Assembly (NCBI GenBank): GCA_965113315.1
Contig: OZ220363.1
DNA: 64,000 bases
Source of the DNA: Podarcis vaucheri
Taxonomy: Eukaryota
Reading direction: 5' to 3' (one strand)
Part shown: one piece after another, positions 20,752 to 33,518 of the stretch
Layout of the letters: every line of letters begins with the position of its first letter
Position numbering within the stretch: the stretch's first letter is position 1
The notes under the pieces: generated by a model
Seen by the model: only the letters and a program-made list of their open reading frames with translations
Told to the model about the DNA's origin: nothing
Database searches by the model: none
Made by a program: the position numbers and the translations under genes

Positions 20752-23700
20752 GTTCAAGAGACCCACGTAGCTAGGAAGCACAAAAAAATATTAATCAATA
20801 AAAGACTGGGAAATGAATTTGAATCCTCGGATAAAGAAAAGAAAAGAGGGGTGGTACTGTACGTTAAAAATAAAATTGAGGCTAAACAGATTTTTAAGGA
20901 TGAAGAGGGGAGGATGGTAGCGGTTAGACTAAATTGGCAAGGAGAAAATGTGGTTGTGATCGGGGTATATGCACCAAATGGCAACAAGACTGATTTCTTT
21001 AGAAACTTAGAAGAGAAAATACTAGAACATATGGATCAAAAGATTATTCTAATGGGAGACATGAATGGTGTGGTTTCGTTAGAGGCAGATAGACTAAGGG
21101 AGGGTGTAAGTAAAGAAGGGAAACTACCAAAATCCTTTTTTTCGATGGCTAAAAATTGCAACTTGGTGGACATTTGGCGTTTGAGACATCCACTGGATAA
21201 GCAGTTTACCTTTTATTCCGAACCACACCAATCGATGTCACGAATAGATCAGGTTTGGATCTCGAGTGAACTCTGTCCAAGAGTTAAACAAATAGAAATA
21301 AGACCAAAAGTAATCTCAGATCATAGTCCGATAGAACTAGAATTGGAGAGTCTTGAGAGAAGAACTTTTAGATGGAGGTTAAGAGAATACCTCCTAGACG
21401 ACCAAAATATTGTAGAAACAGCACAAAAACAGCTAAAAGATTACTTTGCAGACAATTGCGACAAAGGGACAAAGATCAATGTGATATGGGATGCAAGCAA
21501 AGCAGTAATAAGAGGATATTTCATTCAGCAGAATGCGATCAAAAACAAAAATAGAGAGAAAGGGAAAAAAGAAATCTTAGAACAAATAATGGACAACGAA
21601 CAAAAATTAATCCAGAAACCCAATTGCCAGAAAATAAAGGAAAATATCAAAATCCTACAAGCGCAATTTGCCACTATAATAAATAGAGAGGTAGAGTGGA
21701 ATATAAAGAAACTAAGGCAAAAGAACTTTGAATTCTCAAATAAATCAGGTAAATGGCTTGCATGGCAAATTAAAAAAAGGAAAGAACAAGGTACAATAAA
21801 CAAAATTATTGCAGATGGAGAAGAGATAACAGATCCAAAAGGAATTAGAAAAGAGTTTCTGGATTATTATAAAAACCTCTACAAGGATAAAGAGAGAAAT
21901 AACTTAAGGAAAATAGAGAGGTTTTTGAGAGACAAAAAGGTGCAGAAAATCCCAACAGATAAGAAACAACGATTGAATACTCCAATTGAAACAGAGGAGA
22001 TAGAGGAAGCCATAAAAGATTTAAAGAGAGGAAAGGCCCCGGGCCCGGATGGCTTCACAGCGGGTTATTATAAAGAGATGAAATCTATCCTGGTGAATCC
22101 TCTGAAGGTGACTATGAATAACATTCTGAAAAAAAGGAGAAATTCCGGAAACCTGGAAAGAAGCATTTATTACATTTATCCCCAAACAAGATGCGGACTT
22201 AACTCAAGTTAAAAATTATAGGCCGATTTCTCTTCTAAATACAGATTATAACATCTTTGCTGGTATCCTTGCGAGAAGATTGAAGTCGATATTATCAGAA
22301 ACTATCCACAAGGATCAGGCTGGCTTTCTTCCTGGCAGGCATATGAGGGACAATACAAGAAATATAATTAATATGCTAGAATATCTGTCTGCCAGGATTG
22401 ATAAGCAAGCCATAATGATGTTTGTGGACGCAGAGAAAGCATTTGATAATGTGATATGGGACTTCATGTTGAAAAATTTGGAGCATATGGAAGTGGGCAA
22501 GGACTTTTTTAAGGGGGTAAAAGCAATATATACGGAACAGAAAGCCAAACTGATTGTAAACAATATAGTAACAGAGGAAATAAAGATACAGAGGGGAACA
22601 AGACAGGGGTGTCCACTCTCCCCGCTACTATTTATAACAGTCTTAGAAGTTCTCCTAAACTCAATTAGGCAAAACAAAAAGATAAAAGGAGTGACAATTG
22701 GAGAAAACGTGTATAAGACTAAAGCATTTGCAGATGATTTAGTAATAATGACTGAAGATCCAGTGATTACAATAGAAGAAGTACTAAAGGAAATTGATCA
22801 GTTTGGGAAACTGGCAGGTTTCCAACTAAACAAGAGAAAAACGAAAATGTTAGTCAAAAATGTGGACCAAAGTGTGATAGACACAATCCAACACCAATAT
22901 CAGATAGAGGTGGTTAAGAAAGTGAAGTACCTTGGAATCTGGATAACACCCAAGAATATAGACTTGTTTAAGAATAACTACGAGTTGGTATGGAGAGAAA
23001 TAAGGAAAGATTTGGAAGTGTGGGGAAGATTAAAAATGTCATTCTGGGGAAGGATAAATACGATCAAAATGAATATACTACCGAGGGTACTGTTTCTGTT
23101 TCAGACTATTCCCATAATTAAGGGGAGTCGTATTTTTAAAGAATGGCAGAAAATGCTCTCAAGATACATCTGGCAGGGCAAGAAACCCAGGATCCAATTT
23201 AAACTTTTAACAGACATAAAAGAAAGGGGTGGGTTTGCCCTGCCAGACCTGAAGCTGTACTACGAGGCATCATGCCTCTGCTGGTTAAAAGACTGGATAA
23301 AACTAGAGAACAGGGAGCTGCTCGACTTAGAGGGCTTCGATAACAGATATGGCTGGCATGCCTACTTAGGACATGAGAAAAGGAAAGTACATAAGGGGTT
23401 TGGAAACCATGTTTTCAGAGGTCCAATTATTGAAATATGGGAAGGATACAGAAATTTATTAGAACCTAAGGTCCCACATTGGTTTTCACCTCTCGAAGCG
23501 ATGAGTGTGAAGAAAATCAATATGAGGAGTAACTGGGCGACATACAGTCAACTATCAGTTAAAGAAGACGGGAAGTGGAAAATAAAGCCCTATGAGCAAG
23601 TTAAGGAGCATGTGTATGATTGGCTACATCATCGTCAAGTTAACGAGATGTTCAGGAAAGATACTAAAGAAAGAGGGTATGCGGACAAAGACTCCAAATT

Positions 23701-24409
23701 TCAGATGGAAATTATAAATAATGATGTAAAAATAATATCTAAAATGTACCGGATGTTGCTGGATTGGAATCTAGGAGATGAAGAAGTGAAATCAGTAATG
23801 ATCCGCTGGGCTATAGATGTAGGCCATAGTATACAATTTGAGGAATGGGAGAAATTATGGAAAGAGGGTCTAAATTTCACAGCATGTATAACAGTAAAGG
23901 AAAATGTCATGAAGATGTTCTACAGGTGGTACATAACACCTGTAAAACTATCAAAAATGTATAAGATATCCAACAAATGCTGGAAGTGTAAAGATAGGGA
24001 GGGCTGCTTCTACCACATGTGGTGGGAGTGCCGGAAAGTTAAAGAATTTTGGGAAAGAATATATGTTGAGTTAAAGAAAATCTTGAAATATACGTTTAAA
24101 AAGAGGCCTGAAATCTTTCTGTTAGGGTTATTAGGGGAGGACATCGAAAAGAAAGATTGTAAATTTGTATACTATGCGATTACGGCAGCAAGGATAATTC
24201 TTGCCCAGAAGTGGAAAAAACAGGAGATGCCAACGATAGAGGAGTGGAGATCAAAGTTACTAGATTACGCAGAGTTAGACAGACTGACAGGAAAGATCAG
24301 ATACCAAAGAGACCAAAAGTTTATCAAGGACTGGGGAAAGTATTTGGAGTACCTGGAAAGTATCAGTGAGGGAAAAACGACGTTAAAGGGATTTAGAGAA
24401 GCACTGTGA
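20752..24409 (+). pseudogene. L1 ORF2 (APE endonuclease, RT, C-terminal Cys/His motif), N-truncated with one frameshift
   Basis: QETH, GDMN, RID and SDH endonuclease motifs; KAPGPDG; QGCPLSP; FADD; CWKC...HMWWEC. ORFs 20851-22212 and 22280-24409 join if one A is removed from A7 at 22129-22135. Confidence 0.93.
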
Positions 24410-25417: not shown

Positions 25418-25653
25418 NNNNNNNNNNNNNNNNNNNNNNNNNNNNNNNNNNNNNNNNNNNNNNNNNNNNNNNNNNNNNNNNNNNNNNNNNNNNNNNNNNN
25501 NNNNNNNNNNNNNNNNNNNNNNNNNNNNNNNNNNNNNNNNNNNNNNNNNNNNNNNNNNNNNNNNNNNNNNNNNNNNNNNNNNNNNNNNNNNNNNNNNNNN
25601 NNNNNNNNNNNNNNNNNNNNNNNNNNNNNNNNNNNNNNNNNNNNNNNNNNNNN
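25418..25653. other. Assembly gap (N run)
   Basis: N bases. Confidence 1.
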
Positions 25654-27946: not shown

Positions 27947-28399
27947 TGTCAGGGGATGATTAGCTGCTTGTGCGTAAAATAGTGCCCCTTCAGAGTTTGT
28001 GCGACCCCACAAACCTCTGTGTGTGACAGAGCTCCTCAGACATGTCTGCTCTAGTCACTTGTAGAGTCCGACAGTGGCTGTCTGCGGAAGCGCTTCCAGC
28101 AAAGAAGTTCCTTAACGGAAACGCGTCTCCTGGACTCACGACGTGACAGCTTCCGGCGAAGCATAGGTCTCCCTGCAGTTGCTTCTGACACCTCCCCGCT
28201 ATTTTCGCTCGAAGTGTCTCTCACCCCTTTCTCTCCCCTTCTGCTTCCTGCCTGGGCTGCTGCGTCTCTCTCAGCATTACTGAGATCCTCCTCCAGAGAC
28301 CCCGCGCTCCCCCTACTGGTCCCTGCTTTAGCTGTTGACTCTCTCCCAGTCTCTGGGAGCCCTACCACTTCCCTTTCCTCCGATGTCAGTTCCCTGACA
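27947..28399 (-). repeat. 3' LTR of the Gypsy element
   Basis: No difference from 33066-33518 seen on manual comparison. Confidence 0.97.
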
Positions 28400-31300
28400 T
28401 CCACCTCCCCTCCAGGGCCCCCCTCTCCCCCGCCCCTACTCTCTCCTCTGGGCGGTGAGGAGCTGAAACCCCTAAAAGAATCCTCCTCATCTTCCGACGT
28501 CTCGAACATTTCCCTCCATCGGTCTTCGTTCCGACTCGCTGAATCCTCCTCCACCTCGGAATCAGCGAACCCCTCCAACTCTTCTTCTTCGTCGGTGGTG
28601 GCGAAGTATTCCCTCCGGAACCTCGCCACTGGCTGGGGTTTCCGAGGGAATCTCTGATGAAAAGTTTCAATCAAAACCTCGTCATCTACATCCTCTGCCC
28701 TGACCCAGGTGTTTTCTGACTCCGGCTCCCCTTCCCACATTACCAAATACTCTACTTGCTCTCCCCTCCACCTGGAATCGAGAATCTCCGCTACATGGTA
28801 GCTGTGTTCTTTTTCCTCCATAGCTGGTCCCCTATTGACCCTCCCCTCTCTGTCCCCTATATACGGTGACAGCAATGATCTGTGGAACACTGGGTGCAAC
28901 TTCATGTGGTTAGGTAACCGGAGTCTGAAAGCCACTGGGTTGACCTGTTGCGTGACTTCAAATGGGCCCAGTCTTTTGGGTCTTAACTTCTTACAACCTC
29001 CTTTAAATGGTAACCCTTGGGTGGACAACCACACCTGATCCCCCACCCTAATGCTTTCTCCTTCCCTTCTGGTTTTGTCTGCCTGCCTCTTATATGCCTC
29101 CTTCGCCCTGTTTAAATTAAGTTGGAGCTGGCGATGGATCGCTTCCATTTCTTCAACGAACTGTTCTGCGGCTGGAACGCTCCAGTTCTCCCCCTCCCCC
29201 CCTGGGAAGGCTCGGGGATGACACCCGTGATTGGCCAAAAAAGGGCTCATTCCCGTGGACACGTTCTCCGCATTGTTATAGGCAAATTCTGCCAACGCCA
29301 GCTTCTCCACCCAATCATTCTCTCTGTCATTCACATAACACCTCAAATATTGCTGGAGGACACCATTAGCTCTTTCCGCCTGCCCGTTGGTTTCTGGATG
29401 ACGGGCAGTTGAGAAATTCACCTCTACATGCAATAAGCTCATGAGCTTCCTCCAGAACCTGGAAGTAAATTGTTTCCCTCGGTCCGAAACCACCCTCAAG
29501 GGGGCACCATGCAATCTAAACACATTTTCCACAAACAATTTAGCGGTTTCTTCTGCTGTGACCGCATGTGAGCAGGCTATAAAGTGGGCCATCTTGGTTA
29601 ACAGGTCTACCACAACCATAATGGCTGTCTTCCCTTTGGACCTGGGCAGATCAGTCATAAAATCTATTGCCACTGCCTCCCATGGTCTTTCCGGCGTGGG
29701 TAGTGGTTCTAATAAACCTGCCGGTGCCCGCCTCTCCCCCTTGGCTCGTTGACATCGGTCACACCCTCTCACATACTCCCGCACATCTTCCCTGACCTTG
29801 GGCCACCAGAATTCCCTGGTAACCAGCCACATGGTTTTGTGTTGCCCAAAATGCCCTGCTGTGGGGCTATCGTGCAGTTGCTTGAGTACCTTTTCCCTCA
29901 ATTCTCCTTCAGGTACGTATAACGCTCCCTTGTAGTACAACGCCCCGTTTCTCTCCTCAAAACCCCCGGGTTTGTCTCCCTCCCTCCTGAGACCCCTGAG
30001 TTTGTCCTGGGCATATTCATCCTGCACCGTTCCCTCTATCAGTTCCCTTAGCCCCACCAGTGCCGCCCCACACACCCAGCGATCCTCGGGAATGACATGG
30101 GTCTCTTCGGGTGCACCCTCTCCCTCCAAATATTCAGGTTTGCGTGATAGAGCGTCCGCCCTAACGTTCTCCTGGCCTGGTACGTAACAAATCTCAAAGT
30201 TAAATTTGGAGAACTCCTGGGCCCATCTCAACTGCCGTTGGTTGAGCACTCGCGCAGTTCTCCAATACTCTAGATTCTTATGGTCCGTGCGTACTTGCAC
30301 CTTCTGTTGTGCACCAATTAGTAGGTGCCTCCATCTCCGGAAGGCCTCATAAATCGCAAGAAGTTCCCGGTCATACACCGTGTAGTTTCTCTCCGATTTG
30401 TTCAGCTTTCGCGAAAAGAAGGCACACGGTCGCCACTCGGACCCCTCCTTCCCTGGCTGCAGAAGAAGCACCGCCCCTATGGCTCTGTCAGAAGCGTCTG
30501 TTTCGACCCTCAGCTTTTTTTGTAAATCCACATGTAGAAGTTGTTCGTCAGAGGCGAAGGCCTTTTTCAGTTCCTCAAACGCTCGCTCCGCCTCCCCCGT
30601 CCAAACAAACTTCTTTTTGCTGCTGAGACAGTCCGTGATGGGCGCCGTCAGGTGAGCGAAGTTTCGGATGAACTTACGATAAAAGTTTCCAAACCCTAGG
30701 AACCTCTGCACATCCTTCTTAGTCTTGGGGGTTTTCCATTCCAGCACCGCTTGAACCTTGCCGGGGTCCATGGCCAACCCCTTGTCTGACAAGCGGTACC
30801 CCAGGAATTCCACCTCCTTGGTATGAAACTGACACTTCTCCAGTTTCACCCACAGTCTGTTGGCATGCAGCCTGCTCAACACTTCTCTGACGTCTCTCAC
30901 ATGTTGCTCCTCATTCTCCGAATACACCAACACGTCATCTAAGAAGGCCACGCAATTCTTGTAGAGCAAAGGCCCCAGTACATGGTTCATAAAGGCTTGA
31001 AAACACGCGGAGCCTGCTTGTAATCCAAAAGGCATAACGAGATATTCAAATGCCCCCAAAGGGGTGAACATGGTGGTCTTCCATTCATCCCCTTTCCTTA
31101 TACGTATCAGGTTGTACGCCCCCCTTAGGTCCAGCTTTGTAAAAATCTTTCCTTTTCGCACCCTGGTCATAATATCATCAATCCTGGGCATAGGAAAAGC
31201 CACCGGCTCTGTCACTGCATTTAGGGCCCGAAAGTCACATACCAGTCTCGGCTTGTCCGTGTTCTTTTTATCCACAAAAAACACTGGGCTACCCCCCGCT

Positions 31301-32013
31301 GCCTTGGACTCTCTGATGAAGCCTCTCTTCAGGTTCTTGTCAATGAACGCTCGCAACTCCTGCATCTCCCTGTCTGACATGGCATACAACCTGCCTACAG
31401 GAAGCTGTGCTCCAGGGAGTAAATTGATCTGGCAATCAAAGGGCCTATGCGGGGGTAGTTGGTCAGCTTCCTTCTCGCTGAACACGTCGCTGAGATCAGC
31501 ATACTGTGATGGCACCTTCCCCTTCTCCATCACTTCCGTCCCTGCTAGGGTGGCTTGGGCCCCTGCTGACCCCTTTTCCCCCCTGCAGTGTTCTAAGCAA
31601 TGTGCGGAACCGAAGGAAACCACTCTTTGATGCCAGCCCACCAGCGGATCATGTAGGGCTAGCCAGCTCATTCCCAAAATAATGGGAGCGCCTCCCAAGG
31701 TGGCCACATTAAACGCTATCAGTTCTGTGTGCCTTGCCACCCTCATTATCATTGGGATGGTCTGCAAGCTGACGCCTCCTCCCAACAGTTCTCTGCCATC
31801 GATCGTGGTCACCTGCAGGGGGTTGCTTAAGGGGATAGTCTGTATCTGGTGTTCAGCCGCAAACTCCTTGCTCATGAAATTGCAGGAGCTGCCTGAGTCC
31901 AACAGCGCCTTTATTTTTAGGGGGTGTCCATTTTGCAACTCTAGCGACACTTCAATCACTAGAGCAGGTCGAGGAGCTTCTGGCACTGGCACTTGGGAAA
32001 GGGGCACTTTCAC
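28051..32013 (-). CDS. pol: Pol polyprotein (aspartic protease, RT, RNase H, integrase, chromodomain, long C-terminal tail); probably entered by -1 frameshift at 32061-32067
   Basis: LLDSGS protease; MPFGL...FLDD RT; TDAS...ELLA...TDH...ADALSR RNase H; H-x6-H...CDRC and D,D,E integrase; GPF; YHVAEILDSR...EYLVMWEG...ENTW chromodomain; 1320 codons without a stop. Confidence 0.97.
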   Translation of the reverse strand: MKVPLSQVPVPEAPRPALVIEVSLELQNGHPLKIKALLDSGSSCNFMSKEFAAEHQIQTIPLSNPLQVTTIDGRELLGGGVSLQTIPMIMRVARHTELIAFNVATLGGAPIILGMSWLALHDPLVGWHQRVVSFGSAHCLEHCRGEKGSAGAQATLAGTEVMEKGKVPSQYADLSDVFSEKEADQLPPHRPFDCQINLLPGAQLPVGRLYAMSDREMQELRAFIDKNLKRGFIRESKAAGGSPVFFVDKKNTDKPRLVCDFRALNAVTEPVAFPMPRIDDIMTRVRKGKIFTKLDLRGAYNLIRIRKGDEWKTTMFTPLGAFEYLVMPFGLQAGSACFQAFMNHVLGPLLYKNCVAFLDDVLVYSENEEQHVRDVREVLSRLHANRLWVKLEKCQFHTKEVEFLGYRLSDKGLAMDPGKVQAVLEWKTPKTKKDVQRFLGFGNFYRKFIRNFAHLTAPITDCLSSKKKFVWTGEAERAFEELKKAFASDEQLLHVDLQKKLRVETDASDRAIGAVLLLQPGKEGSEWRPCAFFSRKLNKSERNYTVYDRELLAIYEAFRRWRHLLIGAQQKVQVRTDHKNLEYWRTARVLNQRQLRWAQEFSKFNFEICYVPGQENVRADALSRKPEYLEGEGAPEETHVIPEDRWVCGAALVGLRELIEGTVQDEYAQDKLRGLRREGDKPGGFEERNGALYYKGALYVPEGELREKVLKQLHDSPTAGHFGQHKTMWLVTREFWWPKVREDVREYVRGCDRCQRAKGERRAPAGLLEPLPTPERPWEAVAIDFMTDLPRSKGKTAIMVVVDLLTKMAHFIACSHAVTAEETAKLFVENVFRLHGAPLRVVSDRGKQFTSRFWRKLMSLLHVEVNFSTARHPETNGQAERANGVLQQYLRCYVNDRENDWVEKLALAEFAYNNAENVSTGMSPFLANHGCHPRAFPGGEGENWSVPAAEQFVEEMEAIHRQLQLNLNRAKEAYKRQADKTRREGESIRVGDQVWLSTQGLPFKGGCKKLRPKRLGPFEVTQQVNPVAFRLRLPNHMKLHPVFHRSLLSPYIGDREGRVNRGPAMEEKEHSYHVAEILDSRWRGEQVEYLVMWEGEPESENTWVRAEDVDDEVLIETFHQRFPRKPQPVARFRREYFATTDEEEELEGFADSEVEEDSASRNEDRWREMFETSEDEEDSFRGFSSSPPRGESRGGGEGGPGGEVDVRELTSEEREVVGLPETGRESTAKAGTSRGSAGSLEEDLSNAERDAAAQAGSRRGEKGVRDTSSENSGEVSEATAGRPMLRRKLSRRESRRRVSVKELLCWKRFRRQPLSDSTSD
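28400..28413 (-). promoter_or_regulatory. Polypurine tract (plus-strand primer)
   Basis: Minus-strand GGAGGGGAGGTGGA directly before the TG of the 3' LTR. Confidence 0.85.
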
Positions 32014-32067
32014 TGCTCTTTGGCCTGGCTGCAGTGCCCTGCTGGCAACCAGGCGTTGGCTTTTACC
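32002..32067 (-). promoter_or_regulatory. -1 ribosomal frameshift signal (slippery heptamer and H-type pseudoknot)
   Basis: G_GUA_AAA in the gag frame, 6-nt spacer, stem 1 GCCUGGUUGC/GCAGCCAGGC, stem 2 GGGCACU/AGUGCCC; pol is in the -1 frame and open across this site. Confidence 0.8.
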
Positions 32068-33020
32068 TGCTCCGTTTCTCCCTGCTCTTCCCCCTCAACA
32101 GTTCCCACCATCCCTTGCCATTCCTTCCTCTGGGGGCAGACTCTGGCAAAGTGGCCTGGCTGTTGGCAGAGATAGCATTTCCGGGGTCCCTTTCCCTCCT
32201 TCTTCGCCCCCTCACTGGGCTTTGAAACTGCGCGCGCGCGGGCTGTTCCAATTTCCATCGGCTCTGCCGGCGGGAAAGCTGGCTCAGGAATGTCTGGAAT
32301 GCGTAACTCCTTCCAACGTTCCCCTCTCCCTTCCCGCCTCTCCAAGGCTCTTGCCTCCTGGCGCGCTCCAATGGTCAGCGCAGATTTGGTCAGCTGATCC
32401 ATAGACACCGCCCTGGGGCTCCTGGCCAGCTCGTCTTTCACAGCTGAAGAAAGACCTTCTTCAAATAGCATCTGAATGGGTGCTGCCGATAAATCCCACC
32501 CCAATCTGTGAATCAGCATGGTAAATTCAGTCCAGTACTCACGGACAGATCTGCTTCCCTGCTTGCAAGCCATTAGCTGTCTGCGCACTCCCCCCTCCTC
32601 AATATCGCTGGAGAACATGATATCCATTGCACGAAAGAATTTCATAGCGTCCTTCAGGATATCGTTGTGCGTTGCCATCAGGGGTCGAACCCAGTCCCGC
32701 GCCCCCTTCTCAAGATGCCCAATTACGAAAGCAACTCGGGATTCCTCATCAGGGAACTCATCAAACTGCACATTCAGGGCATATTGCATTTCAGTCCTAA
32801 AGGCATGGTAATCCTTGGGGTCCCCCCCAAACTTCTGCACTAATCCTGGTACCTTTCTGGGGAACTGAGTGGTTCTCCCCTTCTTGTCTGCATCTTGAGC
32901 CCTCCTCTCCTCGAGCCTCGCCGTCTGCAGCGCAAGTTGGACCTCCAATGCTCGGTATCTGTCTTCCAAGCTTGGACCAGCTCCACCCCCTGCGGCTCCG
33001 GCTCCTGCTGGGTCGCTCAT
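32010..33020 (-). CDS. gag: Gag (capsid and CCHC nucleocapsid), sushi/PEG10-like
   Basis: ATG at 33020 downstream of the PBS; KQGSRSVREY retrotransposon-gag motif; PMEIG; zinc knuckle CYLCQQPGHFARVC. Confidence 0.93.
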   Translation of the reverse strand: MSDPAGAGAAGGGAGPSLEDRYRALEVQLALQTARLEERRAQDADKKGRTTQFPRKVPGLVQKFGGDPKDYHAFRTEMQYALNVQFDEFPDEESRVAFVIGHLEKGARDWVRPLMATHNDILKDAMKFFRAMDIMFSSDIEEGGVRRQLMACKQGSRSVREYWTEFTMLIHRLGWDLSAAPIQMLFEEGLSSAVKDELARSPRAVSMDQLTKSALTIGARQEARALERREGRGERWKELRIPDIPEPAFPPAEPMEIGTARARAVSKPSEGAKKEGKGPRKCYLCQQPGHFARVCPQRKEWQGMVGTVEGEEQGETEQVKANAWLPAGHCSQAKEQ

Positions 33021-33052
33021 GATGCCTTCTCCTGCACAGGCAGCGTACAGAG

Positions 33053-33063
33053 ACTGTCGGACT
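33053..33063 (-). promoter_or_regulatory. Self-priming primer-binding site
   Basis: Minus-strand AGTCCGACAGT 2 nt after the 5' LTR, with no TGG/tRNA-type start; exact complement ACTGTCGGACT in the LTR at 33194-33184. Confidence 0.85.
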
Positions 33064-33065
33064 GC

Positions 33066-33518
33066 TGTCAGGGGATGATTAGCTGCTTGTGCGTAAAATA
33101 GTGCCCCTTCAGAGTTTGTGCGACCCCACAAACCTCTGTGTGTGACAGAGCTCCTCAGACATGTCTGCTCTAGTCACTTGTAGAGTCCGACAGTGGCTGT
33201 CTGCGGAAGCGCTTCCAGCAAAGAAGTTCCTTAACGGAAACGCGTCTCCTGGACTCACGACGTGACAGCTTCCGGCGAAGCATAGGTCTCCCTGCAGTTG
33301 CTTCTGACACCTCCCCGCTATTTTCGCTCGAAGTGTCTCTCACCCCTTTCTCTCCCCTTCTGCTTCCTGCCTGGGCTGCTGCGTCTCTCTCAGCATTACT
33401 GAGATCCTCCTCCAGAGACCCCGCGCTCCCCCTACTGGTCCCTGCTTTAGCTGTTGACTCTCTCCCAGTCTCTGGGAGCCCTACCACTTCCCTTTCCTCC
33501 GATGTCAGTTCCCTGACA
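33066..33518 (-). repeat. 5' LTR of the Gypsy element
   Basis: Direct repeat of 27947-28399; followed on the minus strand by the PBS and gag. Confidence 0.97.

Follow-up and report, generated by a model that had tools for sequence, protein, structure and literature searches.

The chromovirus and its coding regions

The 64-kb Podarcis vaucheri sequence analysed here (hereafter the window, meaning the whole stretch of DNA) holds a single, intact copy of a Ty3/Gypsy chromovirus, a BLAST search of the window with the element having shown no other, and the tail of its integrase carries two copies of a short motif resembling the one by which cellular proteins bind LEDGF-type domains. Paired long terminal repeats (LTRs), TG..CA ends, a 5-bp target-site duplication (CATAG, identical at both element ends), and open gag and pol frames were all present, as in an intact autonomous LTR retrotransposon. 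The element is complete and its insertion very recent. Its closest public proteins were from Podarcis muralis, with 85-95% identity over Pol. The element is composed as follows, with Pol domains assigned by Pfam.

27947-33518, minus strand: complete Ty3/Gypsy chromovirus, 5572 bp, with an LTR pair, TG..CA ends and CATAG on both flanks
33066-33518, minus strand: 5' LTR, 453 bp, 100% identical to the 3' LTR
27947-28399, minus strand: 3' LTR, 453 bp, whose first 348 nt double as the last 115 Pol codons
32010-33131, minus strand: gag open reading frame (ORF), with a capsid-like domain and a CCHC zinc knuckle
28051-32013, minus strand: pol ORF, 1320 aa, with protease, reverse transcriptase, RNase H, integrase, chromodomain and tail
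Pol residues 28-135: protease
Pol residues 248-408: reverse transcriptase
Pol residues 471-604: RNase H
Pol residues 704-758: integrase zinc finger
Pol residues 776-873: integrase core
Pol residues 991-1051: Tf2-type SH3
28651-28800, minus strand: integrase chromodomain, Pol 1072-1121 (PF00385, E 8.4e-12)
28400-28437, minus strand: purine-rich tract, a putative polypurine tract, directly 5' of the 3' LTR, through which Pol reads as GGGEGGPGGEVD

The gag and pol frames share 32010-32094 (minus strand), an overlap of at most 27 codons in which pol occupies the -1 frame and is open upstream of 32013. This arrangement is compatible with a Gag-Pol protein expressed by frameshifting. At its other end the Pol frame (28051-28437, minus strand) crosses the purine tract, which by its position would act as the polypurine tract, and continues through 348 nt of the LTR, gaining 115 residues with a basic stretch at the end. 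Related Podarcis proteins read into the LTR in the same way, and conservation of the LTR-encoded end was seen among the three designated P0001-P0003.

Two motifs in the integrase tail

The 49 residues that an earlier note on this DNA had quoted as following the chromodomain, EYFATTDEEEELEGFADSEVEEDSASRNEDRWREMFETSEDEEDSFRGF, are the exact translation of 28465-28611 (Pol 1135-1183) on the minus strand, which that note had left unstated. The plus-strand reading of the same interval was discarded, having a stop inside, an unrelated frame, and no motif. The chromodomain end and the motif start are separated by 14 residues, within the integrase tail, and the two motifs fill almost half of the tail that is not LTR-encoded, which amounts to only ~84 residues. 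Both have a common layout, consisting of a predicted short helix that ends in a hydrophobic residue and Phe, an acidic Ser/Thr linker of 8-9 residues, and [F/L]xGF. The region divides into three parts.

28567-28623, minus strand: motif 1, Pol 1131-1149; RFRREYF, then ATTDEEEE (8-residue acidic linker), then LEGF
28522-28566, minus strand: acidic spacer between the motifs, variable, Pol 1150-1164
28465-28521, minus strand: motif 2, Pol 1165-1183; RWREMF, then ETSEDEEDS (9-residue acidic linker), then FRGF

Candidate acceptors for CK2-type kinases, with D/E at +3, were T1139 and T1140 in motif 1 and T1172 and S1173 in motif 2. Position -2 relative to the first FxGF residue was E1144 in motif 1 and D1178 in motif 2, and was S, E or D in relatives. 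AlphaFold2, run on a 17-sequence alignment, modelled the SH3 and the chromodomain well (chromodomain fold at a predicted local distance difference test score, pLDDT, of 80-89). In the tail it placed one helix at Pol 1129-1137, which ends in YF, and another at 1160-1170, which ends in MF, each directly before a linker and at pLDDT ~40-55; the rest of the tail had pLDDT <50 and is thus predicted to be disordered.

The motif that these features recall is the one recognized by TFIIS N-terminal-type domains (TNDs), among them the integrase-binding domain (IBD) of LEDGF, and is known as the TND-interacting motif (TIM) or IBD-binding motif (IBM). Its published definition comprises an obligate short helix that puts F, V, L or I into a first pocket, a flexible, acidic and S/T-rich linker of 8-16 residues that is phosphorylated by CK2, and an FxGF that occupies a second pocket and that no known LEDGF/HRP2 partner can do without (PMC9987994). 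The published consensus is (S/E)xFxGF, and a working DPF3a peptide consists of L-F, ten residues and FHGF (PMC7337902). In flies, JIL-1 binds the LEDGF-type domain of JASPer via DFxGFDE (bioRxiv 624023). The earlier note had likened the lizard layout to IBM/TIM, and the likeness holds against the published definition in its predicted helix, its acidic linker of 8-16 residues and its FxGF (PMC9987994, PMC7337902). Specifically, the tail has FxGF, an acidic S/T linker within the 8-16 range, predicted disorder containing an island of conservation, and CK2-type sites, and as far as the sequence can tell all features of a TIM/IBM are present or nearly so. A phmmer search of the tail against PDB sequences, aimed at deposited IBM peptides or fusions, gave zero matches with E values of up to 10 allowed.

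Residues E, D, S, G and F abound in the tail. A chance test that kept this composition permuted the 84-aa tail 200,000 times. Among the shuffles, 7.7% had at least one copy of [FLM]xGF and 0.2% at least two. For the full layout (hydrophobic-F, 8-10 residues with net charge <= -4, and [FLM]xGF), at least one copy arose in 0.028%, and two copies in 0 of 200,000. The two-copy layout is not a product of chance, a result that we treat as supporting only because the pattern was set after the sequence had been seen.

Conservation across related elements

Integrase tails were gathered from a search of representatives, a full-length Pol search, and a search seeded with P0006. A search restricted to the motif region returned three close Podarcis proteins (P0001-P0003) that are 71-93% identical there. 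Motif 1 was located 28-29 residues after the chromodomain-end anchor F-H-x-x-F-P-x-K-P in 16 related proteins. Its A-type form is R-F-x-x-E-x-F-[A/G]-T-T-D, followed by acidic residues and then LEGF, MEGF, FVGF, FEGF or FKGF, and FIGF stands there in P0277, an element from Podarcis lilfordi. In family B, at 56% Pol identity, the motif 1 position is occupied by D-D-W-L-F, then T-P-T-L-S-A-S-T, and then FQGF, FHGF or FRGF. Motif 2 was present in every A-type lineage that reaches that far, as W-x-x-[MVI]-F, nine acidic or S/T residues, and F-[R/L]-G-F. Among these lineages were P0004 and P0006, whose identity with the window copy is 59-62% over the aligned integrase-to-tail region.

When eight A-type tails were aligned, motif 2 and the sequence beyond it were invariant only at the W, F, F, G and F of the motif. 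The 14 residues following motif 2 contained zero invariant columns, and the spacer between the motifs was 15-42 residues long with a mean majority fraction of 0.48; taken together, spacer and post-motif residues varied in length and had a majority fraction of ~0.47. Across relatives the x of FxGF was E, V, K, I, Q, H, R or L, with F, G and F constant. The alignment of related integrase tails that the earlier note had proposed thus showed motifs kept across divergent subfamilies and flanks that diverge.

We placed these lineages in a tree reconstructed from integrase-core and SH3 columns only, with chromodomain and tail excluded. The FxGF-bearing Podarcis-type lineages formed one clade (Shimodaira-Hasegawa-like approximate likelihood ratio test, SH-aLRT, 99), and 15 of its 15 members had at least one FxGF. 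In the full-Pol tree, families A and B were sisters, separated by about one change per site. FxGF was absent from the other squamate chromovirus tails examined (Podarcis P0173 and P0171, Vipera, and Rhineura), although these are acidic and Ser-rich, and acidity alone is for this reason generic. Elements from fish, amphibians, fungi and metagenomes had short basic tails. Many fish chromovirus integrases (P0020-P0036, P0161, P0266, P0271 and others) carry a basic, AT-hook-like R-P-A-P-R-P-R-G-R-P-R-R-R directly after the chromodomain, which may be a different tail-borne tether to DNA or chromatin.

Codon-level variation was taken from contigs of four runs, aligned to 28350-29150 at >=80% likeness, with the listed variants assigned to codons; the variants come from contigs rather than reads, and contigs lose rare variants. 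Among the variants listed, changes were synonymous at F1183 (TTC to TTT), F1180 (TTT to TTC), E1177 (GAG to GAA) and S1160 (AGT to AGC), and V1154E, in the spacer, was the only non-synonymous change inside 28465-28611. In the same set, 7 of 8 changes in the ten residues after FRGF were non-synonymous, and 6 of 7 at the chromodomain end were synonymous. The synonymous changes at both FRGF Phe codons, which were fixed in contigs of the two more distant organisms, argue for selection on the peptide and not on an RNA or DNA signal. Conservation at the nucleotide level near the polypurine tract was accordingly rejected as an explanation, given that the conserved codons vary synonymously. Judged from conservation and codon changes, the tail motifs are a real, selected linear motif.

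Loss of the chromodomain cage

The Y-W-Y cage with which HP1 reads methylated H3K9 is preserved in group I chromoviral chromodomains, whereas group II lacks the first and third aromatic residues and has been reported only from plants (PMC3605345). The window copy departs from the group I cage, having Y-W-E with the third aromatic lost, and most FxGF-bearing relatives have lost both the first and the third cage residues. In the alignment, the cage residues were distributed as follows.

Window copy and P0001: Y-W-E
Other A-type lineages: S/N/H/T, then W, then E/A/L
Family B: N, then R/K, then T/F, with all three lost in most copies
Anolis P0244 and P0260: chromodomain absent
FxGF-less squamates, amphibians, fish, fungi and metagenomes: [Y/F]-W-[Y/F], with P0171 the sole exception

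Chromodomains within the clade that are without the first and/or third cage aromatic (P0002-P0006, P0274-P0277, P0013, P0159 and others) are group II-like in a vertebrate, and those of family B have diverged so greatly that Pfam misses them.

Across the lineages aligned, cage loss accompanied the presence of FxGF, a link that is suggestive only because it represents about two independent events. One of the lineages concerned is that of the Anolis carolinensis Pol proteins P0244 and P0260 (44-48% identity), which are without a chromodomain and in which the SH3 is followed by R-L-R-D-I-F, eight acidic or S/T residues, and then FEGF. In the tree this lineage had a long branch and fell among the squamate elements outside the FxGF clade, a placement by which the motif costs two changes; its position is uncertain because of that branch length. 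The Anolis motif may be either an independent gain or a motif retained after chromodomain loss.

The earlier note had envisaged a two-part targeting module, chromodomain plus TIM. The Y-W-E cage of the window copy, the more eroded cages of its relatives, and the Anolis lineage that has the motif without a chromodomain all go against this proposal, and a bipartite reader with a functional chromodomain was rejected as stated, the cage being incomplete. Because the cage of the clade is degenerate, the motif probably stands in for methyl-lysine reading instead of complementing it.

Copy number and neighbouring sequence

Pieces of this family numbered in the thousands in contigs of four organisms. 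Thousands of short contigs from runs X1, X2, X5 and X9 matched 28350-29150 at 80-100% likeness, as befits a family that is highly repeated in at least four organisms. Family pieces were also found in run X5, which is guessed to be RNA, although this is no proof of transcription.

About 3.5 kb from the Gypsy insertion there is a LINE-type element at 20851-24409 (plus strand), with adjacent ORFs for an endonuclease/exonuclease/phosphatase and a reverse transcriptase. An assembly gap (N run) at 25418-25653 lies between the two elements.

A proposed docking mechanism and its alternatives

We propose that the tail motifs mimic those of the host and dock on a TND, most probably the IBD of LEDGF or HRP2, so as to steer integration to transcribed chromatin, and we regard the chances of this as about even. 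After translation, CK2-type kinases would phosphorylate the linker Ser/Thr residues, and the W-x-x-hydrophobic-F helix and the FxGF would each fill one hydrophobic pocket of a host TND. FxGF is needed by all known partners of the H3K36me readers LEDGF/PSIP1 and HRP2/HDGFL2, which would make their IBDs the best candidates for docking. The intasome would thereby be tethered to transcribed chromatin, and the presence of two motif copies could add avidity where, for instance, LEDGF is dimeric or several integrase subunits take part. In the FxGF clade, tethering through a host factor would replace direct mark reading by the chromodomain. Linker phosphorylation, the identity of the partner, and the effect on integration-site choice are the elements of this scheme that we infer.

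Several observations weigh against such docking. The first FxGF position of motif 1 is Leu in the window copy and Met in P0003, and position -2 of motif 2 is Asp, versus the published S/E. The family B linker is S/T-rich and non-acidic, and would depend wholly on phosphorylation. Moreover, the AlphaFold2 helix predictions are of low confidence, the FxGF-less squamate tails (P0173, P0171, Vipera, Rhineura) are acidic too, and the correlation with cage loss comprises only about two independent events.

The alternative that survives best accepts the selected motif as real and assigns it a partner other than a TND or IBD. Acidic-aromatic peptides also bind H2A-H2B or H3-H4 surfaces, the PH domain of TFIIH p62, activator-binding domains of Mediator, and adaptor appendages, and through one of these modules the tail could tether the integrase or regulate it. 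The conservation and non-randomness reported above show selection but point to no particular partner, and the acidic, Ser-rich tails of FxGF-less squamate elements would fit a general acidic-tail function older than FxGF. Nevertheless, the conserved residues are exactly those that define the IBM, namely the helix hydrophobics, the linker length, and an F-x-G-F whose x is free, and to our knowledge the conserved G-F spacing is no feature of other acidic-aromatic motif classes, so that we consider a different partner unlikely, if still to be reckoned with.

A more sceptical explanation is that the tail is a generic acidic, disordered spacer in which [F/L]xGF has no function and is kept only by the close kinship of the copies. 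The agreement of P0001-P0003 is indeed weak on its own, given their 71-93% identity in the region, and the shuffle pattern was defined post hoc. Kinship of this kind sits poorly with the retention of the motifs between families A and B, whose cores are about one change per site apart and whose remaining tails are unalignable. It also sits poorly with x and linkers that vary around a constant F, G and F, and with Phe codons that, among the variants listed, change only synonymously beside a non-synonymous run. We disfavour the generic spacer and judge it improbable.

Finally, retroelement proteases cleave between hydrophobic residues and this Pol ORF unusually runs through the purine tract into the LTR, making trimming plausible, but the idea that the hydrophobic islands are element-protease cleavage sites that trim the LTR-encoded extension, or else nucleotide signals near the polypurine tract, is highly improbable, as synonymous changes at conserved Phe and Glu codons oppose a nucleotide-level signal, and a cleavage site leaves unexplained both the W-x-x-hydrophobic-F helix at a fixed 9-residue distance and the family B motif at a fixed 28 residues from the chromodomain.

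Docking on a host TND can be taken one step further. In this extension the lizard Gypsy clade would have dropped chromodomain mark reading and would ride LEDGF/HRP2 or another TND factor, arriving at the lentiviral solution by mimicry of a host motif. It may have done so twice, because the chromodomain-less Anolis lineage has the same motif. We advance this extension tentatively, as a possibility somewhat short of an even prospect.

Site choice by LTR retrotransposons in vertebrates is largely unknown, and the worked examples are yeast Ty1, Ty3, Ty5 and Tf1, together with HIV-LEDGF and MLV-BET (MLV, murine leukaemia virus; BET, bromodomain and extraterminal). If docking on a TND is correct, the TND-TIM network would be targeted by mobile elements beyond lentiviruses, and the lizard integrase would clearly exemplify how a transposon can mimic a linear motif. 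It would also provide a natural experiment, in that cage-intact sister families and FxGF-tail families occur in one genome and could be compared for what the tether does to the insertion landscape and to the fitness of the host.

Comparison with known systems

The earlier note had known of no description of such a motif in a vertebrate Gypsy element, and our literature search, which had subscription journals outside its scope, likewise found none there and no description of a TIM/FxGF motif in a retrotransposon integrase; what it found on integrase targeting consisted of reviews of retroviral and yeast systems only.

Cellular IBMs (JPO2/CDCA7L, PogZ, IWS1, MLL1/KMT2A, ASK, MED1 and DPF3a, and JIL-1 in flies) share with the lizard tail its predicted disorder and helix, its acidic S/T linker with CK2-type sites, and an FxGF in which x is free. 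Proteins that carry them often have more than one motif copy, as does the lizard integrase (PMC9987994, PMC7337902, PMC7835958, bioRxiv 624023). In contrast to these host transcription factors, the lizard candidate is the integrase of an active-looking LTR retrotransposon, its motif 1 opening with Leu and its motif 2 having Asp at position -2.

Lentiviral integrase is tethered to H3K36me-marked, transcribed chromatin via the IBD/TND of LEDGF and HRP2 (PMC9987994, PMC7835958). This tethering by LEDGF/p75 (and HRP2) is the mechanism that we propose for the lizard element. HIV-1 integrase contacts the IBD through the folded dimer interface of its catalytic core, not through a linear FxGF. Unlike HIV-1 integrase, the lizard element would copy the linear motif of the host partners themselves.

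Short C-terminal peptides set insertion preference in other systems as well: the MLV integrase tail binds the ET domain of BET proteins, and the targeting domain of Ty5 binds Sir4. The C-terminal peptide of Ty1 integrase reportedly docks on AC40, likewise setting insertion preference. Docking by the integrase C terminus is similar in all three, whereas motif class and proposed partner differ from those of the lizard element, and none of these peptides is known to use an FxGF/TIM.

Group I chromoviruses (MAGGY, Tf1, Sushi) belong to the same element class and have the chromodomain in the same place at the integrase end. Their cage is Y-W-Y, whereas that of the lizard copy is Y-W-E and those of its relatives are more eroded, resembling group II (PMC3605345).

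A further parallel is PogZ, a domesticated pogo transposase that docks on the IBDs of LEDGF and HRP2 via an IBM, as reported by Bartholomeeusen 2009 (cited in PMC7835958). PogZ belongs to the host and has its origin in a DNA transposon, whereas the lizard motif resides in an autonomous, recently inserted retrotransposon.

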